The notes under the pieces were generated by a model. That model saw nothing but the letters and a program-made list of their open reading frames with translations, ran no database searches and was not told the origin of the DNA. 64,000 bases of DNA, from assembly GCA_025558095.1 (NCBI GenBank), contig JAIVFI010000037.1, positions 124,001 to 188,000 on the forward strand, given 5' to 3'. The stretch comes from Hyaloraphidium curvatum SAG 235-1 (Eukaryota > Fungi > Monoblepharomycota). How positions within the stretch are numbered: the stretch's first letter is position 1; each line of letters opens with the position of its first letter. This document shows positions 7,290 to 63,780 of the stretch, piece after piece. A program made the translations under genes and the position numbers.

Positions 7290-8729
7290 CTACTTTGCGA
7301 ACTCCACGACGCCGTACTTGGCGCTCCACCGCCAATCCTCGTCCCCCTTGGCGAGGACGGCGGCCTCCACACCTTCGTCCAGCCCGACGATGCAGTCGGC
7401 CTTGTTGGTCCTCAGCGCCAGCACAGGCACGCCGGCCCAGACGGGTCCTATTGCTTCCGCAAAAGGGGTCGTCACCGGCCAGTGCGCGTCGTAAACGAGC
7501 TTGCGATCTATAGTGCAGTGAGCCAGCGCCCAAATCATGCCGACAGGCGACTCACAATTCAAGTCGCCTTTGAAAATGATCAAGTGCGAAGCGTTGAGCT
7601 GCTCGAAGAGGTCCGGTGCCCGCTCGGCGATATGCCAAAAGGCAAATCCAGAGCACCAGAACCTGTGCTCCCTTAGCACCCATTCGCCTCGCTGCAGATA
7701 CCCTTTCCAACGCGCCACCAGCGCCTCGACTTTGGTCTGCGTCGCGGAAGCAAAGCCAAAAAAGGCAGGATCAAGAAGCTGGGCAAGCAGGAGGTCAAAG
7801 TCCGAGATCATGGTATCGCTGACGAACCACGGGATGGTTTTGACGTGGAAGACGGTCTTTGCGGCACGACCGGTGAGGTGGAGGTGGTCCGCAAACACGA
7901 GGTCCGAGAACAGCTCGAAAGCAGCATTGTCGAGGACGAAATCGATCTGCGCGCCCGACTTCTGGCCGATGTGCGTCCACGCCGCCTCGATGTCGTTCCG
8001 CAGGATGTTCGCCTCCGCCGCGGCCAACCCGCTCGAAGCACGCGATTGGAGCTCCTCGACAGTCTCTGCCGTCAGGTTGGGAAGGAGGGAGAGGTCCATG
8101 CTGTTGCCCCAAAGGCAGACCTGCACCAGCTCATGGAAGAGGAGGCGCACGGCCTCGGGAGAGGAGAGTATGGCGGGCTTCGGAGGTTCCCAGAAGCGCG
8201 AGACCAAGTCCTCTACCGCCTTTGCCGAGTCCTTGAAGGAAGACGTCTTCGATTCGAGGAAAGGGTCGAAGCTCCGCCAAGTCGGCGCCAGCTGGATCGC
8301 CTCGCGGATCCGGCGGTAGACGTAGCACTCCACAAAGAGCCAAGTCGCGCTGAAAAACGTCGCGCCGGGGAAGTACTTGTCCAGGACTTCGTTCCACTCC
8401 TCGAAATCACCCTCCCCATCGTCACGGATGTGTTCCAGCTTCCGGTCGTGCTGAAGTTCGTAGCGGAGCCTCCCCACGTCCGCGACGATCTTCTTTGCGT
8501 CCGCGGTCGTCTTGCCGTCGTTGCGGGGGTCCGCTTCGAAGCCTTTAGTCATGTAGATCCGGCAAACGGCATCGATGACCTTGGTGATCGTGACGGGGAC
8601 GCGTTTCGCGAGAGTGGGAAACGCGAAAGACTGCTTGTCGGAGCCGCGCGAGGCAGGAACGGGGGGATCGTTCGGGTTGGGAGACGCCGGCGGCGTCGTT
8701 GCGTCGCCGGGCGCGTTCGGCGAGGGCAT
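7290..8729 (-). CDS. DUF89/ARMT1-like damage-control phosphatase
   Basis: WLFVECYVYRRI, LWGNSMDLS, DFVLDNA, PWFVSDT, FKGDLN|YRKL (short in-frame intron near 7510-7557), LRTNKAD. Confidence 0.93.
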   Translation of the reverse strand: MPSPNAPGDATTPPASPNPNDPPVPASRGSDKQSFAFPTLAKRVPVTITKVIDAVCRIYMTKGFEADPRNDGKTTADAKKIVADVGRLRYELQHDRKLEHIRDDGEGDFEEWNEVLDKYFPGATFFSATWLFVECYVYRRIREAIQLAPTWRSFDPFLESKTSSFKDSAKAVEDLVSRFWEPPKPAILSSPEAVRLLFHELVQVCLWGNSMDLSLLPNLTAETVEELQSRASSGLAAAEANILRNDIEAAWTHIGQKSGAQIDFVLDNAAFELFSDLVFADHLHLTGRAAKTVFHVKTIPWFVSDTMISDFDLLLAQLLDPAFFGFASATQTKVEALVARWKGYLQRGEWVLREHRFWCSGFAFWHIAERAPDLFEQLNASHLIIFKGDLNCESPVGMIWALAHCTIDRKLVYDAHWPVTTPFAEAIGPVWAGVPVLALRTNKADCIVGLDEGVEAAVLAKGDEDWRWSAKYGVVEFAK

Positions 8730-8941
8730 AGTCGTGATTGAAACGCGGAGCTGTCTCTGCGTGCGCAAAGGGTTGATCGGACAAGATTCGATTGACGGTG
8801 CCTCGGGCTCGGCTCAGGGAGACACTGTTGACTTGTTGACAAGGACCCACAAGGACCCCCAGTGGTCAACAAAATCACTAGCTCGTCTTGCTGCTGCTAC
8901 GGCCCGCCGTTGCGTCTACGGGGCTCAAGCCTGCGTCCGGA

Positions 8942-18114: not shown

Positions 18115-18881
18115 CTTTGCTGATCCTGTCAAGGGGGAACGTCAGGGATCGGGGGGTCAGAACATCGTGGACGGCGTCGTGCGCCCCGGAAAAGGTCAGG
18201 AAGCCCGTTCCCGGGCAGCCGCCGTCCCATCGCAGCGTCCCTGTCGCGAGAACCGGGCGCCCTTGCCCTTGCCATTTGTCATTGCGCGGTCCGGTCCGCC
18301 ACGCGCAATTCCCGCTCCCGCCGCGCCGCGGTTCCCGGAGTCCTCGCCTAACACGACGTGCACGAGCCTTACGGACCTTTGCGCGGGTCGGCGAGGAGCG
18401 AACGCGGCGGTGGAGCTGATGGGCGGGTTTGCGAAGAGCGAGACCGGCGTTGCGGAGGTTCCCCAGCCCGGCCCCGGCGCACGTGGACTCCGGCAGGGTC
18501 TGGCCTTCCCAAGCAGCACACATATCCAGAGTCGGCAGACGTGACTAGATATAGAAGAAACATCATGCTAATTCGTCGTTCGGTCTTCCGCGGACGACGT
18601 GAGGCGGACTGCTTCCCCGTCTTGGGTTCACCACGAAGCCCTTGGTTGCATTCTAGTCGTCGCAGCAGTCCGGGATATTGATTGCAAAATTTGCATCATG
18701 CAATTTAATCATCAGCGGCGCTTGGATGGGCGCCCCTCCGGTGCGTGCGTGCGGAGAAACCGGATCGGTTGGTTTGCTGGGCCGGGCCGTCACTTGCGCG
18801 TGCATCAGGGGGCCCTCGGGACCCGGCCAGCCCCGCCGCCGCCGTCCATGCCTGCGGTCCGCCCGGCGCGAGCAGCCCACG

Positions 18882-21800
18882 ATGTTCTCGCTGCGGTCGC
18901 CTGCGGAGCTGCTGCGCGAAGCCGGGTGCCGGCCGCACCACCCCGTGATGATCGTGCCGGGCTTCATGTCGTCGGGGCTCGTGTGCCGCGACTCGCGCGT
19001 GCCCAAGTGGCGCGGCAGGCGGCTGTGGCTCGACGTCGCGAAGATCGTGCTCGCCGCCGAGGAGGCTCTGGCCGACCTCGCGGACTCCGCGCCGGTGCCG
19101 CTGGACGCGTCGGCGCCGAGCGAGCTGGAGCCAAACAGCGTGCTGCCGCCGCGCAGCTCGAGCCTGCGACAGCGCGCCGTTGAGCCCGACGGGGAGCCCG
19201 GGAGCCCCGCCAGCCCCGCAGCCCCGAATCCTGCCACGCCGGCGGCCGCTCCGGCCGAGACGATTCCGCGGGCCCGGGCCTTCCTGGCACATCTCGGCCT
19301 GCAGCACCCGTCGCTGCGGGCACACCCGCCCGGGATCCGCGTGGGGCCGCTCGAGGGCACCCAGGGCGTGGACTTCCTCAGCACGACGACCTTCGTGGCC
19401 GGCTCGACCTATGTCTTTGGTCCGCTCCTGGAATCTTTCCGTGCCGTGGGCTACATCGACGGCGTGAACCTCGACGCCTGGCCCTACGATTGGAGGCTCT
19501 ATCCCGGCGACATCGAGTGCGCTTCGACCACGAAGCCGCCGGATTCATGGTTCAACTCGCTCATCGAGCGGCTCGAGGAAATGCAGAAGGACAGCGGCGG
19601 CCGCAAGGCCGTGATCCTCGCGCACAGCATGGGCTGCCGCCTCGTCCACTACCTCTCGCTGTGGGCCGAGTCGAACGGCCTCGCCGCCCGGCTGGACGCC
19701 TGCGTCGACAAGGTGATCGCCATGGGCGGCCCCTTCCTCGGCGCCTCCAAGGGCATCCGTTCCGTCGCGACCGGGGACTCGATGGGCCTGCCCTTCCTGA
19801 CGGACGACGAGCAGGTCTGGCTCGCGCGGCACCTCGCCTCCCCGCCCTTCCTCTTCCCCTCCCTCCCCTCGGCCTGGTCCCACCTCGCCCCGCACCTCTT
19901 CCCCGCGGACGCCGGCGACGAAGGCGCCTACTGCCTCCTCAAGCTCGAAGCCCACGTCGAGGTCCGCATCGCCTGGGTGGACCTGGACGCCCCCGCCGAG
20001 CCGGACCCCAAGGCGGGGCCGGACGTGCTCACGATCGAGCTCACCTGGCGCGGCAAGCCGCTGCGCTCGCTCCCGGCCGCCGCGGTGTACCCGCCCGCCG
20101 CGGGCACGCGCCTCACGTGGCCGGCGCCGCAGGAGTTCCAGCTCGCTGCGGGGGCGGCGGACAGGATAGCGGGCGACGGGGTGCTCCGCGTTGCGGTGTA
20201 CTCGGCCAAGCGCGGGCTGCTGGGCGAGGGCACGGTGGACCTGGGGTCGATGGATCCGCTGCCAAAGGACGGGGAGCTGGTGACGCCCGCAGAGAGGATC
20301 GCGCTGCTGGACCTGCAGGCGGGCATGACGCAGGCGCAGCGGGACGCCGCGGAGGTGGAGCGGCGGCGCAAGGAGGCGGCCAAGAGGAAGGAGAGGGAGG
20401 CGCAGGCGGCGGAAAAGGCCGAGAGGGACCAGAAGAAGAGGGTTGAGGAGGCGGCCAAGAAGCGGGCCAAGTTTGCCGAGTGGGAGGTCAAGGAGAAGGA
20501 GAAAGTGAGAGACACGCTGGCAAAGGAGGCCGAGGCGCGTGCATGGCGGCTGCAGCAGGCGAGGGAGAGGATACCCCGCCGCCGGGCCGAGGACGAGGAG
20601 CGCCTGGCCAGGGAGCTCGAGCAGATGGCGAGCAAGCACAAGCTGGAGCTCTCGCTGTGCGAGACGGACCTTGCGCGCGCGAAGCTGCTCAGGAAGCAGT
20701 CGGAAGTGATGGGCAAGTGGGAGCGCGCGGCCGCCAAGTCGCGCGAAAAGTGGGACAGGAGGGACGCGGCCGATCTCGCCAAGGCGGAGAAGCACAAGGT
20801 GGACGAGGACCTCAAGGCGGCGCAGCGGGGAGCGGCCCTGTGGCTGGCGCTGGACAGGAAGAAGGGAGACTACCGGGCCAAGCTCGAGAAGGAGCTGGAA
20901 CAGCTGGGATTCACGGTCGAACGGCTCGCTTCGGAAAGTCTGCTGGTTCCGCCTGAGCTTCAGCACACCGAGAGCTTTGCGAGCGACGTGTCGGAGCTTC
21001 CTTCGAGCGCTCTTCCAGCAAAGGTCCGGGCACAGGACACGGACATCTCCGAGGCCGTCGAATCCGGTGCGAACAGCCCCGTGGCACTTCTCGTCACCAG
21101 GTCGGACATGTCGGACACTTTGTCCAGCGCACCTTCGGTGGTGCCGGACCTCGAGGCCACCGAAGGATCGCAATCTGACGCGACGCTGGCGTCGGATCGT
21201 GCGCTCCTGCTGGACGTGCCGCCGACAAAGGAGGAGCTGAGGCAGCGGGCGAGGGAAGCGGCCCCTGTGATTGGTTACGTCGGACTGAGCGCCACCTTCT
21301 ACCCGGCCGATTCTTCCGTGTATTCTGTCGCGTCGCCGTCGGAGCCCGGAGTGCGGTACGCGCCGACGACGACGGCGGAGGTGCTAGCCCTCGACGGGGC
21401 CCTGGCGGTCGTCAACCTCATCCGCGACGTGTACGATGCGGATCCGATCTTCGGCCCGGGAGGCAAGAACCTCGCGGCCCGCGTTCCGCGCGCGCTCCGG
21501 AGCTGGCACCTGGTCTACGGCACCGGGCGGCGCACCGAGATCGGCTTCGTCGTGCGGCGCCGGACAAAGAGGATCACCCCGGGCCCGGACGGCCAGCTGT
21601 GGAACAGGTTCAAGCTCGACGACAGGCCCTACGGGCACGTGGGCAACGGGATCGTCATCCAGGGCGGCATCGTCTACGAAACGGAGAACGTCACCCAGCC
21701 CGCCATCCTATCTCCCACGCCCGGCCAGGCCTTCCGGTCGTGCGGCGACGGGACGGTGGCATTGGTCTCGCTGCTGCACCCGCTCACGTGGCGCAGGCAC

Positions 21801-21980
21801 GGCCTCGAGGTGACCACGCACGAGCTTCCGGACGCCGAGCACAGGGCGATGCTCGGGGAGGAGAGGCTGCACAGGCACCTGATCGACATGACGTGCGTGT
21901 ACGAGGACGTGAAGGAGGTGAAGCTGTCGCAGCTGGAGCGGATGAGGGACCGCTTCAAGTCTTTGATGGGCAAGCATTAG
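18882..21980 (+). CDS. LCAT/PDAT-family acyltransferase with a large internal insertion (C2-like plus coiled coil)
   Basis: PVMIVPGFMSSGL, RLWLD, PYDWRL, AHSMG (Ser), GDGTV (Asp), AEHRAML (His). Start codon uncertain. Confidence 0.85.
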   Translation: MFSLRSPAELLREAGCRPHHPVMIVPGFMSSGLVCRDSRVPKWRGRRLWLDVAKIVLAAEEALADLADSAPVPLDASAPSELEPNSVLPPRSSSLRQRAVEPDGEPGSPASPAAPNPATPAAAPAETIPRARAFLAHLGLQHPSLRAHPPGIRVGPLEGTQGVDFLSTTTFVAGSTYVFGPLLESFRAVGYIDGVNLDAWPYDWRLYPGDIECASTTKPPDSWFNSLIERLEEMQKDSGGRKAVILAHSMGCRLVHYLSLWAESNGLAARLDACVDKVIAMGGPFLGASKGIRSVATGDSMGLPFLTDDEQVWLARHLASPPFLFPSLPSAWSHLAPHLFPADAGDEGAYCLLKLEAHVEVRIAWVDLDAPAEPDPKAGPDVLTIELTWRGKPLRSLPAAAVYPPAAGTRLTWPAPQEFQLAAGAADRIAGDGVLRVAVYSAKRGLLGEGTVDLGSMDPLPKDGELVTPAERIALLDLQAGMTQAQRDAAEVERRRKEAAKRKEREAQAAEKAERDQKKRVEEAAKKRAKFAEWEVKEKEKVRDTLAKEAEARAWRLQQARERIPRRRAEDEERLARELEQMASKHKLELSLCETDLARAKLLRKQSEVMGKWERAAAKSREKWDRRDAADLAKAEKHKVDEDLKAAQRGAALWLALDRKKGDYRAKLEKELEQLGFTVERLASESLLVPPELQHTESFASDVSELPSSALPAKVRAQDTDISEAVESGANSPVALLVTRSDMSDTLSSAPSVVPDLEATEGSQSDATLASDRALLLDVPPTKEELRQRAREAAPVIGYVGLSATFYPADSSVYSVASPSEPGVRYAPTTTAEVLALDGALAVVNLIRDVYDADPIFGPGGKNLAARVPRALRSWHLVYGTGRRTEIGFVVRRRTKRITPGPDGQLWNRFKLDDRPYGHVGNGIVIQGGIVYETENVTQPAILSPTPGQAFRSCGDGTVALVSLLHPLTWRRHGLEVTTHELPDAEHRAMLGEERLHRHLIDMTCVYEDVKEVKLSQLERMRDRFKSLMGKH

Positions 21981-56933: not shown

Positions 56934-57143
56934 TTATAAATACGGGAAAAGGGTAAGATCGGGAGGGCAAGTTCCGCGTCCTTAGAGGTTGACTAGCAAA
57001 ATAACGAATCTCCGTTCGAAGTATCTCCCTTTTCTCCAGCGTCTCCCTGGTCTCCCTGGGGCCGTGCGAACACAGCCAGCGACCAGCAAAAAGGCGATCC
57101 TTCCGGGCCCTTCTGCATCTCGAGCCCGGTGGACACCCGAACC

Positions 57144-57890
57144 ATGGTCGACGCCGAAACGCCCTCCTCCGACATGCAACAGGCCCCGCAGGACGAAGAT
57201 GGTGACCTCCTAGCGCGCACGAAATGCCCGGACGTCCAGTGACACCCGCTGCCGCCGCAGACTTGGCTCCTATGCACGTAGCACGGCGGGCGCCGCACGA
57301 GAACCCGACATGCGACCCAAGACGACGACGTGATCAACATCGTGATAGAGATCTGATCAACATCGACATCAGCAACCTGCGGTACACCTCCCCGCCGTTC
57401 CTGGCCACCGACGTCGCGTGCAACGGCAAGATCACGTTCAACATCGTCCTGTGCTCGCCCGCCGGAATGCACACCGACTACGCCGGCGGTGAGTTCGTTT
57501 GAGCCGTCGCTCCGCCCACATTCGGCTGACCATGCGCGCGCTCCGGCCAGGGACAGACATCGGTGCCAACTGCAACGTCCTCAACATCAACATCAGCGAC
57601 CTGATTTACAGCTACGTCCTTGTCGCTTGTCACGCCCGAGGGCGGCATGCACCTGCGGGGCGTTCCCGACCGGCTCCGTCGCGCGCTGCCTGGACGTGGC
57701 GGGCGACATCGAGTTCAACATTCGGATGGAAAAAGGGGGGCCGCCCGAGGGCGGGTGGGGGAATGCTGTGGGGTTGCGGGCGGGGCGGGAGGGTTCGGTG
57801 CCGTCGGAGAACTCGGATGGCTGGGAATCATCCGGGAGTTCGTCGAATGACGGATCCGAGGGAAACGATGAACCGCTCGTGGGACCGTAG
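57144..57890 (+). pseudogene. Degenerate hypothetical gene with an internal repeat
   Basis: INIDISNLRY..GKITFNIVL and LNINISDLIY..GDIEFNIRM lie in different frames; one intron-like segment; no continuous ORF. Confidence 0.3.
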
Positions 57891-58592
57891 ATTGCAAGGG
57901 TGGTTGCGATCCAGCAGAGCTTCATGTTCGCTTGACACTACAGTTGTGAGAAGTTGAGAAGCCAACACGATGTGCTTGTTTCACCTCCAGCATTCAACCC
58001 CCGACCGCCCGCGCCGCCATGCCCGTGAACGCGCCTGTCCCCGACAGGAGGACGCTTCTGTACCGTGCCTTGGTCTCCGGGAACCGCGAGCCCCTGACGG
58101 AGGAACGAGGCGCTTCACACTCCGCATCGCGTCCCCCCCCGCATCCCCCGCGCCGGCGCCCGCGCCCGCCCCCGGACGCAGCGGAGCCTCGGAGCAGTGA
58201 GAAGAGGGGTTTGTGACCGAAGACGCGCGAGGTGTGCTCTTGTTCGGGGTTTCCGGGCGGGTCCTTTGTCTGATCGGTTCGAACGACCCTCCGCTTGCCA
58301 CGGGAGATGCTTTGACAAAGGTCCTGAGGCCCAAACACCCTTTCGCAGGCTCGCCTTCCTGACGTACTGCTGGACTCGTAGACTCATCTCGACTTTGGTT
58401 CTGGAGCTTGACAGCGACGTGACTTAGCGCTCGCGACGGCTCCCTACTCGGTCCACGTCGGTTGCTCAATTCGCGAGAAATGTAGACAAGGTGGATAGTC
58501 ATGATCTGATTGATGAGCTGATACTGGGACTAAGTGATGCGCTCGTGCCTACGTGACCTCAGTCGCTGGCCGGCCCCTCCGCGGTCTCCACA

Positions 58593-59873
58593 TCATGCCC
58601 TTCCCCCCCCCAGCCCTCCTCCCCTGTTGCACCCTCCCCTCGCATGCCGCGCCTTCAGCTTCCCCACCACAGTCTCCACGACCCTCCTCACCTCCCCCTC
58701 CGTGATCCCAGAGAACAGCGGCACCCCGAACGCCCGGTCGGCCAGTTCCTCCGCCCTCGGCACCCCCTCTTCGGCCCCGCGCAGGCCGGCATAGGGCGCC
58801 ATCCGGTGCAGCGGGTAAAAGCCCGGCCGCGTCTCGACGCCCTCCGCCAACAGCTCCTTCAAAAAGGAGTCCCGCGCGTCGGGCGTCCAGGGGCCGCGGA
58901 GCTGCAGCACGTAAACCCAGTGCGAGGGCGTGCACCCCGGCCTGCGCGCGGCGGGGACGAGGAGGTCGCCGTGCGGGGCGAACAGCGCGTCGTACAGCTC
59001 CGCCGCGGCCGCCCGGCTCGCCAGGAAGGAGTCCAGCCGTTCGAGCTGCGCGCAGCCGACGGCCGCCGGGAGGTTCGAGAGGCGATAGTTGAACCCGGGT
59101 TCGTCGTGCCAGTACCGCTTTCCCGGGCGCATGCCGTGGTCCCGCAGCATCCTCGCGCGGGCGAGCACGGGGGCGGAGCGGAGCAGCACCGCGCCGCCCT
59201 CGCCGGTGGTCGCCGTCTTGTTGGCAAAGAAGGAGAAAACGGAGGCGTCGACGTCCGACAGGCCGCCGATCGTTTCGGGCCCGTAGGAGGCTCCCAGGGA
59301 TTCGGCGGCGTCGGCGACGAGCAGCAGGTTCCGGCGGGCCGCGAGGGCGCGGAGCGCGTCCCAGTCCGCCGGCACGCCGTACAGGTCCACGGCAATCAGC
59401 GCCCGAGTCGCCGGGGAGCATTTGCTCTCCGCGTCCTGCGGGTCCATCCCGCCGTATTCGTCGACGTCCACCAGCACCGGCGCCGCGCCGGCCAGCAGCA
59501 CCGCGTTGGCCGTCGCCGCGAAAGTGTACCCCGGCACCAGCACCTCGTCGCTCTTCCCCACGCCGAGCGCCGCCAGGGCCAAATGGAGCCCGGCGGTGCC
59601 GCTGGACACGGCCAGTGCGGGGACGCCGCACAGCGCCTCGAGCGCCGCCTCGAAACGGGTCACGTACGCCCCTTGGGAAGACACCCAGCCGCTTTGGACG
59701 CAGTCGAGCACGTACGCGGCCTCGTTCCCGCTCAGGTCGGGCCGCGCAACGGGGATGAAGGGCGGCGAGGGGGTTGTTTGGGAGTCATCCCCGCCGGCGT
59801 GCCCGTTGGGGCCTCGGACCTTTCCTGGGGCATCGGCCCGGACAGAATGCTCGGCGGAGCCTCCGTCGACCAT
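58593..59873 (-). CDS. DegT/DnrJ/EryC1/StrS PLP aminotransferase, GDP-perosamine synthase-like, intronless
   Basis: IPVARPDLSGNE, SGWVSSQGAYVTRFE, VSSGTAGLHLAL, TFAATANA, DAAESLGA, FSFFANKTATTGEGG (PLP Lys), GFNYRLSN, GVETRPGFYPLH. Confidence 0.93.
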   Translation of the reverse strand: MVDGGSAEHSVRADAPGKVRGPNGHAGGDDSQTTPSPPFIPVARPDLSGNEAAYVLDCVQSGWVSSQGAYVTRFEAALEALCGVPALAVSSGTAGLHLALAALGVGKSDEVLVPGYTFAATANAVLLAGAAPVLVDVDEYGGMDPQDAESKCSPATRALIAVDLYGVPADWDALRALAARRNLLLVADAAESLGASYGPETIGGLSDVDASVFSFFANKTATTGEGGAVLLRSAPVLARARMLRDHGMRPGKRYWHDEPGFNYRLSNLPAAVGCAQLERLDSFLASRAAAAELYDALFAPHGDLLVPAARRPGCTPSHWVYVLQLRGPWTPDARDSFLKELLAEGVETRPGFYPLHRMAPYAGLRGAEEGVPRAEELADRAFGVPLFSGITEGEVRRVVETVVGKLKARHARGGCNRGGGLGGGRA

Positions 59874-59974
59874 CGGCGAGGGGGAAAGAATGGGCTGCTC
59901 AGCAATGGAGCAATAAAACCCTTGGCGAAATCCCGCCGTTTCTCGCCGCCGTCGCGAATCCTGTCGATCGCGGC

Positions 59975-61591
59975 ATGCCCTGGCCGCGCTGGCCGCGTCT
60001 CCTCGCGGCTCTGACTTTGGCGGTGCTTGCGCTGCCGCTGACTCCGCTGCCGTGGCGGTTGGGGGTGCGGGACCCGCCGGCGGTGGAGCTCCCTGCCGGG
60101 TACGCGCTCCGCGACGCCGGCGAGGCGGAACTGGGGAAGGCATTCCTGCGGCGCGCCCCGGCCCGGCTGCGCGTCGACGAGACCACGTGCGAGGGGTTCG
60201 ACCTGATCGACCAGGCCGCAAGGGCAGCGAAGGACGGCGCGGGCGGGGTCGCGCGGTCCCGCCGGCGCCGCGCCGCCGTGGCCGTGGCCGACTACCACGG
60301 CGCCACACACAACGTCGGCATGTTCCGCGAGATGCACGAAATCGTCGTCCGCGCCGCTGAGGACCTCCCGATCGGGGAGGCGCCCGCCGCGGGGCCGTTC
60401 TTGACGGGCACCAGGCTCGGCAGGCGGCCGCTGCACGAGCCGGTGTACCTCACGTGCCCGCCGCGGGCAGCACGCCGCGAGGTGTTCGGCGCCTTTTCCG
60501 CCGCGAAGTTCGTGCGCCGCGCCGACGTGCTCTTCTTCTCCGTGCCGGCGGCGTTGGTGCAGCACTTCATGGCGCTCAACCGTTCCATGGTCCTGTGGTC
60601 CGTCACGCCCCCCGACCACGGCCGCCAGAACGTCGCCAGCTTCCGGCGCTTCCGCTCCGACTTGCGCCGCGCCGCCGCGTCGCCCCGCGTGACGATCGTG
60701 GCCGGCAACGCGTACAACGCGCGCTACCTCGAGCACTACTACGGCGTGCGCCCCGCGGCGGTCATCAGCCTGTACGGCTCGTACCGCTCCGCGCCGCCTT
60801 CCCTCCGCCCGGCAGGCAAGCCTAAGCTGGGTCTGTTCCCCAAGTGGAGCTGGACCCGGTTCCCATGGGCCGCGCCAATCGCCGCGTCCCTTGCCAACCA
60901 CTCGAGCCTCGCCGTCCGCTTCGACGTCGAGGTCGCGGACCCCGTGCGCATCGGCTCCTACGCGGCCCTGGTGCACCTGCCCTACACGCACAACACCAAT
61001 CTGCTCCAAGAAGCCTGGGCCGCGGGGGTGCCGATCTTTGCTCCGACCCTCGACATGCTGGTCGCGCTGGACCAGGAACGCTGCCTGATGAGCAACCGGA
61101 TATACTGGGCGCACGTGCCCGAGCCGTGCCGCCCGCGGTTCCCCTACGGCGCCGCCGAGACGCAGTACCACCTCTGGCCTTCCGTGAAGGACCCCCCGGC
61201 GCACCGGTACTGGCTCGCCCCGTCGTCCTTCTACGACGCCGCCGACCTGCCGCACGTATCGCACTACCCTTCGTTTGACGCGCTGCCGGGGATGCTGCTG
61301 GATGCGGACCTGGCCGGCATCGCCGCGGCGATGCGTGCCGCCGCGCCGGCGCGGGAGCGCCGGATCCGCGAGGCGTGGAGGCGGGTTTTCGCCCGCGCGC
61401 TGCGGCACGTTCCCGACGCGCCGGAGCCGCCGGCGGTCCCCGGCAGCCTGGAGGAGGGCATGCGTGCGCTGTGGGGGGACGACATGTCGGGGCCGGGTTA
61501 CGAGGCGGAGGAGAAGGTGCCCTGCGACAGGTTCGCGAGGGGGGTGCCGGAAAGGGGCACGTGCGACGAGTGGCTGCCGTTCCCGTTCTAA
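59975..61591 (+). CDS. Type II membrane protein, putative glycosyltransferase (GT-B-like), intronless
   Basis: N-terminal anchor; ADYH, GNAYNARYLEHYYG, YAALVHLPY..LLQEAWAAGVPIFAPT (E..A.GVP nucleotide-sugar binding pattern), YWLAPSSFY..LPH. Confidence 0.6.
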   Translation: MPWPRWPRLLAALTLAVLALPLTPLPWRLGVRDPPAVELPAGYALRDAGEAELGKAFLRRAPARLRVDETTCEGFDLIDQAARAAKDGAGGVARSRRRRAAVAVADYHGATHNVGMFREMHEIVVRAAEDLPIGEAPAAGPFLTGTRLGRRPLHEPVYLTCPPRAARREVFGAFSAAKFVRRADVLFFSVPAALVQHFMALNRSMVLWSVTPPDHGRQNVASFRRFRSDLRRAAASPRVTIVAGNAYNARYLEHYYGVRPAAVISLYGSYRSAPPSLRPAGKPKLGLFPKWSWTRFPWAAPIAASLANHSSLAVRFDVEVADPVRIGSYAALVHLPYTHNTNLLQEAWAAGVPIFAPTLDMLVALDQERCLMSNRIYWAHVPEPCRPRFPYGAAETQYHLWPSVKDPPAHRYWLAPSSFYDAADLPHVSHYPSFDALPGMLLDADLAGIAAAMRAAAPARERRIREAWRRVFARALRHVPDAPEPPAVPGSLEEGMRALWGDDMSGPGYEAEEKVPCDRFARGVPERGTCDEWLPFPF

Positions 61592-61699
61592 TCCACGCTG
61601 CACATGATCGGATGGCGTGATCGGATGCGTCCGGTGCCGGTTCCCGTTCGGGATTCAAGGGGACGTGGGGGTGAGGCGAGGCGGGACGGCCGGCGCAAA

Positions 61700-62965
61700 A
61701 TGCTGCGCGTCGTGCCCCGCCTGCACGGGCCGGCGGCGCTGGGTGCCGCGGCACTGTTCACCGCTGCTCTTGTCCTCTTCTACGCGTGGCGGACGGGGAT
61801 TCTGGGGCCGGAGACGGGGCGGGCGGCGGCGCCGGACGACGCGGACGGCGACCTCCTCCGAACCACGTCCGGCGAGCGCGTCCGCGAGCTGTTTGCGCGG
61901 TACGACGCGGCGGCGGGCTTCCCGCGCATCGACCTCGTCGTGCCTCTGGACCCCGGAGCGCTGCCGCTGCTGCACCCGCTGGCCGCCTCGGCGGACCTCT
62001 TCTGGCCGCACAAGGCGGGCAGGAAGATCCTGCTGGTCGACGGTAACGCACCCCCGCTGGGCCCGCTCACGCCTCCCGGCTGGGACGTCGAGGAGGTGCG
62101 ATACCCGCCCGGCCTGGACGGCGTGGGCGGCTGGCTGCGCTCGCAGTGGGTTGCCGCCAACGCCGACGTCCTCTCGCGCTCCGGGGCCGAGTTCCTCGCC
62201 TTTCTGGACGCCGACTCGCCGCTCGCCCTCAAGGTCACCCCCGATCTGCTGTTCGACGCCGCGGGACGCGTGCGGGTGATTGGCAACTACGCGTGGCAGC
62301 AGCGCCTCTGGGCCCCGTCGTTCAGGTTCTACCTCAACGACAGCGCGGGCACCATGGCGCCCTACATCAACTCGATGGTCTTCCTCCCGCAGGTGTTTCC
62401 CCGGGCGATGCTCCCCGCCGCGCGGGAGTTCTACTCCTCCCTGCACGCCGGCCGCCCGGACGTCGCCGAGCTGATGAAGCGGTGGAGCGCGACCACCAGG
62501 GACCCGCACATGTCCTTCTTTGCCCTCTTTGCCCACTTTGCGCTCGCATCCCCGCGGTGGAAGGACCGCTTCTTTTTGGTGGACGAGAACCGCGACGCCC
62601 CCGTGCTCCGCTCCGCCGCGCACCTCCCGTACCAATCCTGCTACCTGCGCAGGCTGGCACCGGGGTTCGCCAGCGCGGTGATAATCGCCGGCGTGAGGCA
62701 CAAGCGGTACGACTACGCGGCGTACTACGCCGCCGCGAGGGAACTCCTCCTCTCGGGGGCGTGCGCTTCCGTCCCCGCGGGCAGCGTCCCCGCGTGCGCG
62801 CGGGTGGAAGCGCCGGATGTCGAGGATGCGAGGAACTTCTGGTGGGAGTATTCGGCCGAGAACTGGTGGCCCAATGCGACGGCCGCGGGAGGGGGGTTCA
62901 GGGGGGCGTGGGACGCGCATTTCGCGCCTCTGCACGCCAAACTGAGGGAGCTGATGGGGCCATAG
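61700..62965 (+). CDS. Type II membrane protein, putative GT-A glycosyltransferase, intronless
   Basis: N-terminal TM and stem; IDLVVP, S..LFWP, GWLRSQW..AD, FLAFLDADS (DxD motif), TPDLLFD..GR. Confidence 0.65.
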   Translation: MLRVVPRLHGPAALGAAALFTAALVLFYAWRTGILGPETGRAAAPDDADGDLLRTTSGERVRELFARYDAAAGFPRIDLVVPLDPGALPLLHPLAASADLFWPHKAGRKILLVDGNAPPLGPLTPPGWDVEEVRYPPGLDGVGGWLRSQWVAANADVLSRSGAEFLAFLDADSPLALKVTPDLLFDAAGRVRVIGNYAWQQRLWAPSFRFYLNDSAGTMAPYINSMVFLPQVFPRAMLPAAREFYSSLHAGRPDVAELMKRWSATTRDPHMSFFALFAHFALASPRWKDRFFLVDENRDAPVLRSAAHLPYQSCYLRRLAPGFASAVIIAGVRHKRYDYAAYYAAARELLLSGACASVPAGSVPACARVEAPDVEDARNFWWEYSAENWWPNATAAGGGFRGAWDAHFAPLHAKLRELMGP

Positions 62966-63089
62966 GGGGGAGAAGCGGGGGAGCAGACGCCGGTGCCGGT
63001 GCGTGTTGGACTGGCAACACATCGGCTGCCCACGGTCCGTAGCCCCAGCATCCCGCAGCACGCCATCCTCCCGCCCCAATGTCCCCGCC

Positions 63090-63608
63090 CTACGCGCCCG
63101 CAACCTCCCTCTCCATGATCCACAGCGTCTCCCTCCCCTCCGCATCCGCGAACCCCTCGGAAAGGTAGAGCGCCCTCGCGCCCGCGTTGGCCCTGTCCAC
63201 CGAGAGCCGCACCCGCGGCACCCCGTTCTCCCGTGCCTCGGCGAGCAGCCTCCGCACGACGGCGCGTCCGATCCCGGCGCGGTGGCACAAGGGGGACACG
63301 GCGACGCCGAGCCAGACGTGCCCGCCGTCGGGGTCCAGGTGGCCGTACCCGACGCACTCGGGGGGCCCTTCCGCGTCCCGCAGCGCAAGCACGGTAACCA
63401 GCTGCCCGGCCAGCGCGGTGTCAAACTCGCGGCGGGCAAAGTACCGGAACGCGGGGAGCGCGGCGGCGTTCGAGGGCGGGGAGAAGAGGAACGCGCGGAG
63501 GGCGGCGAGCAGCGCGGCGCGGGCGGGGTCGGGGGCCGGCGGGAGCAGCGCGAGGCGGATGCCGGGTGGCGCGGAGGGATCCGGCGGTGGCGCGTTTGGG
63601 GATGCCAT
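63090..63608 (-). CDS. GNAT N-acetyltransferase, intronless, bacterial-like
   Basis: FRYFARR, VGYGHLD, WLGVAV..HRAGIGR (motif A), LSVDRANAGARALY..GF (motif B). Confidence 0.9.
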   Translation of the reverse strand: MASPNAPPPDPSAPPGIRLALLPPAPDPARAALLAALRAFLFSPPSNAAALPAFRYFARREFDTALAGQLVTVLALRDAEGPPECVGYGHLDPDGGHVWLGVAVSPLCHRAGIGRAVVRRLLAEARENGVPRVRLSVDRANAGARALYLSEGFADAEGRETLWIMEREVAGA

Positions 63609-63700
63609 GAGGCGTGGCAGAGCCGGACGGCCGAAGGACGCAGCGGACAATTGGCCAAGGGATTCGCTGGCGCCCCATTGTGCTCCCCCCACGATCGAAC

Positions 63701-63780
63701 GGGATCACGGAAGGGGAGGTGCGCACGGTCGTGGATACGGTGGTGGGCGGCTGTCGAATTGGCATGCGAGGGGACGGGGC
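63701..63780 (+). repeat. Inverted degenerate copy of the aminotransferase 3' end (58630..58709)
   Basis: Encodes GITEGEVRTVVDTVVG versus GITEGEVRRVVETVVG in the gene; the following ggcatgcgagggga is also shared. Confidence 0.8.

Follow-up and report, generated by a model that had tools for sequence, protein, structure and literature searches.

A four-gene cluster for the probable synthesis and transfer of N-acylperosamine in the fungus Hyaloraphidium curvatum

Which sugar would a fungus make with a bacterial-type aminotransferase, two putative membrane-anchored glycosyltransferases and a small acyltransferase packed side by side? The question is raised by a stretch of 64,000 nucleotides from Hyaloraphidium curvatum SAG 235-1 (contig JAIVFI010000037.1, positions 124,001 to 188,000 of the forward strand), hereafter the window, in which four genes lie between positions 58,593 and 63,608: an aminotransferase gene (AT), two glycosyltransferase-like genes (GT1 and GT2) and a gene for an N-acyltransferase of the GNAT family. 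We consider it probable that this cluster makes GDP-N-acylperosamine in the cytosol and then transfers N-acylperosamine in the secretory pathway. A sequence-only reading of the window had proposed a pathway for a nucleoside diphosphate (NDP)-linked 4-acetamido-4,6-dideoxyhexose together with its transfer. The ranking of solved structures matched by AT, the modelled fold of GT1, the linkage of the genes and the presence of GDP-mannose 4,6-dehydratase (Gmd) in the host argue for this proposal and would narrow it to perosamine. Perosamine is favoured because three independent contexts agree, namely the conserved AT-GT2-GNAT block, the Per-like neighbours of the GT1 subfamily and a bacterial GNAT-per-gmd locus. 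Gene identities, the family or fold of AT, GNAT and GT1, and linkage were observed; from these we infer substrates, order of steps, localisation, acceptor and role.

The AT protein matched the DegT/DnrJ/EryC1/StrS family (PF01041) at E 1e-94, with 318 bits against a cut-off of 19.8, over model positions 4-359 of 360. The catalytic Schiff-base Lys219 and Asp188, which binds pyridoxal phosphate (PLP), were invariant in the alignment and line up with the Caulobacter enzyme. DegT-family dehydrases such as ColD and E1 carry a histidine at the Schiff-base lysine site. In the PDB search the best match was the Caulobacter perosamine synthase (3bn1/3dr7, E 5e-84), and the next family followed at 1e-53. 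The top two database matches, P0154 and P0155 (52%), both come from another eukaryote; after them came bacterial proteins at 44-50%, many of them named perosamine synthetase. In quick trees AT, P0154 and P0155 formed one group (99-100 SH-aLRT) inside a bacterial Per-like set. Moreover, one close bacterial match adjoins a verified gmd gene.

A second line of evidence comes from GNAT. General searches with this protein returned weak RimI-like matches, and the WecD models were marginal (E 0.08). Among about 800 genomes of Bacteroidota and Pseudomonadota a single clear homolog appeared (E 1e-13; 35% identity along 118 amino acids), and it has the FRYF and GYGHLD motifs in common with the window protein. 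The homologous domain forms the head of the gene directly upstream of a per-like gene, which is followed by gmd, in a surface-polysaccharide operon; the per-like gene matched perosamine synthase in the PDB at E 3e-93. Since the bacterial homolog lies directly upstream of per and gmd (n=1), the GNAT subfamily is tied to GDP-perosamine independently of the fungal cluster. PerB has the left-handed beta-helix hexapeptide fold and the window protein that of the GNAT family, so that it would be a functional analogue of PerB unrelated in fold. WecD, PseH and FdhC are GNATs that act on nucleotide-linked amino-dideoxy sugars. The bacterial operon itself (L062:6464-11620, Bacteroidota genome G300) comprises a NeuB-like gene, a fusion of the GNAT domain with a TIM barrel, per, gmd and a cytidylyltransferase gene, and it may convert GDP-mannose via N-acylperosamine into a nonulosonic acid. 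When Bacteroidota as a whole were searched with the GNAT domain of G300, no second example appeared at E 1e-12.

The third gene to be placed is GT2, for which Pfam, NCBIfam, PDB and PHROG searches returned no match. Its sole close homologs, P0002 and P0003, are 44% identical and keep both D170 and D172 of a DxD motif that follows a hydrophobic strand. Language-model neighbours of GT2 were eukaryotic protein clusters containing DUF6492 (0.95), and the fold is likely GT-A. A distant paralog elsewhere in the host (C6:499352-500524, L020:4558-5730; 27% over about 170 amino acids) has a putative anchor and a DxD motif, the same strand-helix layout and a residue corresponding to D170; no sugar-synthesis gene adjoins it. 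P0002 and P0003 lie on two contigs of JGI 3300059473, where the GT2 homolog is divergent from an AT ortholog and is followed by a GNAT-family gene and then by a gene of the short-chain dehydrogenase/reductase (SDR) type. Because both homologs sit in this AT-GT2-GNAT context, we assign GT2 to the cluster, and it is the context that is decisive. The flanks of the two blocks differ and contain eukaryotic genes and hAT/MULE transposons. Since the proteins are about half identical and the blocks differ in their flanks, the AT-GT2-GNAT core has been conserved and was moved or duplicated as a block. Clustering in relatives, which had been put forward as a check, was thus found on two contigs of another eukaryote, and the Per/GT2/GNAT core appears to predate H. 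curvatum. Both blocks end with an SDR gene of 351 amino acids, which has no counterpart beside the window cluster.

Compared with these blocks, the window cluster has GT1 inserted between AT and GT2, and its GNAT gene is inverted. This arrangement would also suit four genes that do not form one pathway, be they two partial modules (AT, GT2 and GNAT with an inserted GT1), chance neighbours or a decaying silent cluster. A further trace of disorder is a broken, inverted relic of AT, in which a 47-nt arm is 87% complementary to positions 58663-58709 (local score 76 against a shuffle maximum of 43); it marks a past local rearrangement. Nevertheless, none of the four frames is broken and their codon bias is strong, AT and GT1 share one divergent spacer of 101 bp, and relatives of GT1 are independently linked to Per genes. 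We therefore regard separate or decaying modules as highly improbable and return to a single perosamine pathway.

GT1 gave no match in Pfam, NCBIfam, PHROGs or PDB sequence searches, and a word-index search found no homolog. A HMMER search of representatives yielded 358 homologs, the named ones from Chrysochromulina and a pelagophyte, and the sequence relatives of the family are eukaryotic only, including haptophytes and pelagophytes. The AlphaFold2 (AF2) model built from a 102-row alignment (pLDDT 82, pTM 0.86) has two Rossmann domains of the GT-B type and superimposes with VIA-align Z of 14-15 over about 280 residues on BshA, PglA, WbnH and PimA. As far as a model can tell, the earlier call of a glycosyltransferase for the first membrane protein is borne out. 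The Pfam GT4 profiles PF00534/PF13692 matched 0 of 102 family members, which places the family outside CAZy GT4 proper. A C-terminal donor-binding motif of GT4 type was present, with Glu346 conserved in 97% of the family.

Together with P0005-P0008, GT1 forms a subfamily (local support 99) that carries distinct residues at several positions conserved in the rest of the family. The two other members on long contigs each have a gene nearby for a hexapeptide acetyltransferase-DegT fusion that resembles PerB-PerA, at 1.8 kb in GCA_003358065.1 (L023) and at 8.3 kb in ERZ25039600 (L024). Perosamine synthase was the best solved match of both fusions, and the L023 fusion also matched perosamine N-acetyltransferase. 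Next to a third member, on a contig of 2.9 kb, lies a gene resembling nucleotide-sugar transporters. No DegT gene occurred within 10 kb at three loci that hold more distant members of the family. This neighbourhood pattern, seen in a small sample, is as expected of a perosaminyltransferase subfamily, and GT1 is the best candidate for the perosaminyl transferase. A single eukaryotic Per clade that unites the fungus with L023 and L024 was not rejected (p-AU 0.245). L024 as a whole (L024:1-18366) is an 18-kb eukaryotic glycosylation island with two GT1-family genes, a GT61 gene, transporter-like and acyltransferase-like genes, two tandem anchored orphans and the PerB-PerA fusion.

The sugar might also be put on a secreted small molecule or a lipid, or be used in the cytosol, rather than end up on a Golgi-made surface glycan. 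Amino-deoxy sugars and GT-B enzymes are typical of natural-product glycosylation, and the top Foldseek rows for the GT1 model were, weakly, antibiotic enzymes of CAZy family GT1. The N-terminal hydrophobic segments are moderate as well: each transferase has a single one, at residues 9-27 of GT1 (Kyte-Doolittle 1.83) and at residues 12-30 of GT2 (1.90), and either could be an anchor or a signal peptide. Against this stand the anchor-like N-termini found in both transferases and in their homologs, the GT4-type enzymes as top structural matches by Z, the transporter-like and GT61 genes in homolog clusters and the lack of any backbone synthase gene near the cluster. We thus hold a small-molecule or cytosolic use of the sugar to be improbable. 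No hydrophobic segment was detected by the Kyte-Doolittle scale at the N-termini of AT and GNAT, the enzymes placed in the cytosol.

Several observations weigh against perosamine. AT reached no NCBIfam equivalog cut-off, and its best scores, all below the cut-offs, were for LegC and PseC. It shares moderate identity with the characterised Caulobacter enzyme, and DegT enzymes change their sugar and nucleotide specificity through few substitutions. Another close bacterial match, P0170, adjoins a UDP-GlcNAc-type dehydratase gene (PF02719) and not gmd. As one close match lies beside gmd and another beside a different dehydratase, the perosamine specificity of AT is likely, not certain. The tie of GNAT to perosamine comes from one bacterial locus, and this locus also carries the NeuB-like and CMP-transferase/cytidylyltransferase genes. 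A GNAT gene beside another per-gmd pair (next to P0195) was considered and proved unrelated to the window GNAT. For GT1 the comparison of contexts comprises only three positives and three negatives. Finally, no gmd, dehydratase, transporter, flippase, ABC exporter or polymerase gene was found within the cluster, and it is the missing dehydratase and transporter that count here.

Much of this would fit a similar pathway with another product, in which AT acts on a UDP- or dTDP-4-keto-6-deoxy sugar (of the viosamine or bacillosamine type), a larger acyl group is added or perosamine is an intermediate. The LegC and PseC scores, the neighbour of P0170 and the additional genes of the bacterial GNAT operon point in this direction, as do the SDR gene at the end of the second eukaryote's block and the many matches to NDP-sugar dehydratases and epimerases in the host genome. 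However, perosamine synthase is the clear top solved match both for AT and for the aminotransferase partners of the GT1 and GNAT homologs, and the viral viosamine synthase L136 matched AT at only E 5e-5 in the PDB search. We consider a different sugar unlikely and continue with GDP-perosamine.

The supply of this donor would depend on genes elsewhere in the genome. The sequence-only reading had suggested looking for Gmd and a nucleotide-sugar transporter, and the genome has two Gmd genes on contigs C24 and C18, which, unlike in bacteria, are unlinked to the cluster, and, as candidate sugar transporters, about eight loci of the TPT/NST family, none of them in the cluster. In the proposed pathway, host Gmd would first provide GDP-4-keto-6-deoxymannose outside the cluster. 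AT, as a cytosolic PLP enzyme, would then transaminate C4 and yield GDP-perosamine, the donor of 4-amino-4,6-dideoxy-D-mannose. In a third step cytosolic GNAT, in place of bacterial PerB, would use an acyl-CoA (most likely acetyl-CoA) to acylate the amino group at C4. A nucleotide-sugar transporter encoded elsewhere would bring the donor into the secretory pathway, where GT1 (GT4-like and probably retaining) and/or GT2 (GT-A-like) would transfer the perosaminyl residue; the other enzyme may prime, extend or cap. The acceptor could be a glycoprotein, a glycolipid or a wall polysaccharide, and a likely role would be to mask the surface from viruses, parasites or grazers.

The positions of the genes and of adjoining features are collected in Table 1. 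That four open reading frames (ORFs) are tightly packed here was already evident from the DNA and was confirmed with the same starts and stops and with gaps of 101 bp (AT/GT1, divergent), 108 bp (GT1/GT2) and 124 bp (GT2/GNAT). The third-position GC content (GC3) of the four genes is 0.89-0.92 against a second-position content (GC2) of 0.53-0.57, and GC3 lies within the range of host genes. Sequence alignments with homologs cover the entire frames without intron-sized gaps, and we therefore read the genes as intronless. The region was first described as otherwise intron-rich, yet the window contains other long uninterrupted ORFs (7293-8813, ARMT1-like; 18657-21977, LCAT-like), so that missing introns by themselves say little for a foreign origin. 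Between the gene for isopropylmalate synthase and the cluster, some 1.5 kb (window positions 57000-58500) hold short coding-like fragments and no recognised gene.

Table 1. Positions of the cluster genes and adjoining features within the window
Feature	Position	Strand	Description	Basis
AT	58593..59873	-	DegT/DnrJ/EryC1/StrS PLP aminotransferase, probably of GDP-perosamine synthase (Per/RfbE) type; 426 aa, ATG to stop, no internal stop	Pfam, PDB ranking, tree
AT/GT1 divergent spacer	59874..59974	.	101 bp; candidate bidirectional promoter	
GT1	59975..61591	+	GT-B glycosyltransferase (predicted) with putative N-terminal anchor, GT4-like fold, unnamed eukaryotic family; 538 aa, ATG to stop, no internal stop	AF2 model, structure matches, neighbours
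GT2	61700..62965	+	Putative GT-A glycosyltransferase with putative N-terminal anchor, DxD (D170-A-D172); 421 aa, ATG to stop, no internal stop	Conserved DxD, layout
GNAT	63090..63608	-	GNAT N-acyltransferase, candidate GDP-perosamine N-acetyl(acyl)transferase; 172 aa, ATG to stop, no internal stop	PF00583 E 1e-12; bacterial per-gmd context
AT relic	63655..63780	+	Inverted copy of the 3' end of AT, degenerate and frameshifted, immediately upstream of GNAT	Alignment

Intronless genes and an AT and a GNAT of bacterial type could also point to contamination by a bacterium or a giant virus, or to a viral insert in the genome, and the predicted structures closest to GT1 are unnamed viral glycosyltransferase families. 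In contrast, the cluster lies within a contig of 531 kb, with an intron-containing gene for isopropylmalate synthase on one side and a kinase gene on the other, its GC3 is host-like, both transferases have eukaryotic sequence relatives only, and an orthologous block exists in another eukaryote. Besides, tblastn searches of phage and plasmid sequences gave no match, and scans of metagenome and viral collections with GT2, AT and GNAT detected no relatives. The genome itself (31.9 Mb in 55 contigs, GC-rich) contains three fungal-type chitin synthase N-domains, which mark the host as a fungus. A contaminant or viral insert is largely refuted and in our view hardly credible. Horizontal acquisition of the cluster genes, as first proposed, is well supported for AT and plausible for GNAT, but the sequence relatives of GT1 and GT2 are eukaryotic only. 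The cluster thus has the appearance of a chimera in which sugar enzymes of bacterial type are combined with transferases of eukaryotic type.

The host genome contains eight full DegT genes, including AT of the window, and six of the eight loci have anchored glycosyltransferase-like or orphan membrane proteins as immediate neighbours. The host has about six rare-sugar microclusters, of which the AT cluster is one, the others being of WecD-WecE, FdtA-FdtB, colitose-like and RfbH/thiamine pyrophosphate (TPP) enzyme type. Contigs C39 (L015:3366-5546) and C21 (L016:3606-5564) each encode a fusion of a WecD-like GNAT with WecE, the WecE part above its NCBIfam cut-off, which places the Fuc4NAc pathway of the enterobacterial common antigen within one polypeptide. 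Beside these fusions lie anchored orphans, a gene resembling methyltransferases and a GT15 gene, and the C21 block has a GC3 apparently below the host average. On C5 (L017:3350-5710) a ColD/RfbH-like dehydrase is fused to an Fcl-like reductase beside an anchored orphan and may represent a one-gene GDP-colitose pathway. A TPP enzyme gene on C29 (L018:2302-7993) is divergent from an RfbH-like gene and accompanied by a 761-aa orphan; just upstream lies an NDP-sugar epimerase gene (C29:581294-581992), and together they are a candidate pathway for a branched-chain sugar of the yersiniose type. An FdtA ketoisomerase-aminotransferase fusion on C24 (L013:2056-5538) beside an anchored GT8-like orphan is a candidate cassette for a 3-amino-3,6-dideoxyhexose. 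On C20 (L019:3711-5594) an acetyltransferase of NeuD/PglB/VioB type is joined to a very divergent DegT protein, and C4 (L014:4397-5659) has a lone DegT gene among ordinary fungal genes.

Taken further, several microbial eukaryote lineages, the fungus and at least three other eukaryotes, may carry compact mobile rare-sugar cassettes that combine bacterial O-antigen sugar enzymes with undescribed families of Golgi transferases and give a variable, serotype-like surface. At least six cassettes would then let H. curvatum display perosamine, 4-acetamidofucose, a 3-amino-dideoxy sugar, colitose-like sugars and branched sugars; the members of the GT1 subfamily would be the first perosaminyltransferases in eukaryotes, and GNAT would be a second perosamine N-acyltransferase, unrelated in fold to the known one. 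We advance this wider scheme tentatively and lean slightly against it in its full form. In the O-antigens of Brucella, V. cholerae O1 and E. coli O157, N-acylperosamine is the immunodominant sugar, and it is considered bacterial. Full-text literature searches that covered few subscription papers, and so do not prove priority, turned up no account of perosamine synthesis in fungi, algae or other cellular eukaryotes. DegT enzymes go unmentioned in the main text of a survey that dealt with gene transfer into 44 early-diverging fungi. A review describes such rare sugars as mostly confined to bacteria, with giant viruses as an exception (PMC9614988). If our proposal is true, a fungal nuclear pathway enlarges the eukaryotic glycan alphabet, a function is gained for one subfamily of GNATs and for two families of orphan transferases, and enzymes compatible with the secretory pathway become available for glyco-engineering. 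Moreover, because sugar genes adjoin their likely transferases, gene position yields testable donor predictions for unannotatable glycosyltransferases in algae, protists and early-diverging fungi.

Among known systems, CAZy GT4 enzymes (BshA, PglA, PimA and WbnH) resemble GT1 in the two-Rossmann GT-B fold (Z 14-15) and in the C-terminal region of the donor-binding glutamate. GT1 differs from them in its low identity (7-15%), the absence of a Pfam GT4 match, its putative membrane anchor and the unnamed viral families as nearest models. GT1 and GT2 belong to no described family. WecD, PseH and FdhC provide a precedent for the proposed action of a GNAT fold on a nucleotide-linked amino-dideoxy sugar. 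Unlike WecD (E 0.08 to its models), the window GNAT belongs to a separate subfamily with the GYGHLD motif that is tied to per-gmd in one bacterial genome.

Related N-acylperosamine O-antigens are known from Brucella and Vibrio cholerae O1. In Caulobacter and E. coli O157 GDP-N-acetylperosamine is made by Gmd, Per/RfbE and PerB/WbdR (bioRxiv 2020.10.10.334391 and general knowledge), and the characterised perosamine acetyltransferases are left-handed beta-helix proteins (bioRxiv 2020.10.10.334391). The fungal genes differ from this bacterial pathway in being nuclear and distributed over both strands, in having a GNAT instead of PerB and in lacking gmd, flippase, ABC exporter and polymerase genes within the cluster. 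With neither wzx/wzy nor wzm/wzt and no operon, the cluster is not a bacterial O-antigen locus, and its transferases carry putative eukaryotic-type N-terminal anchors and have no bacterial homolog that we could find. A similar arrangement outside bacteria is the glycogene cluster of mimivirus (R141, L136, L142 and five glycosyltransferases), which makes UDP-N-acetylviosamine for fibril glycans (PMC9614988). Here, too, an aminotransferase, an N-acetyltransferase and glycosyltransferases are clustered for a 4-acetamido-4,6-dideoxyhexose, but the mimivirus system is viral, cytoplasmic and independent of the ER and Golgi, uses the gluco/UDP series with a beta-helix acetyltransferase, and its L136 is distant from AT. 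The proposed fungal pathway is like the bacterial one in that a Per-type AT with the catalytic lysine, an adjoining N-acyltransferase and a nearby transferase of GT4 fold occur together.

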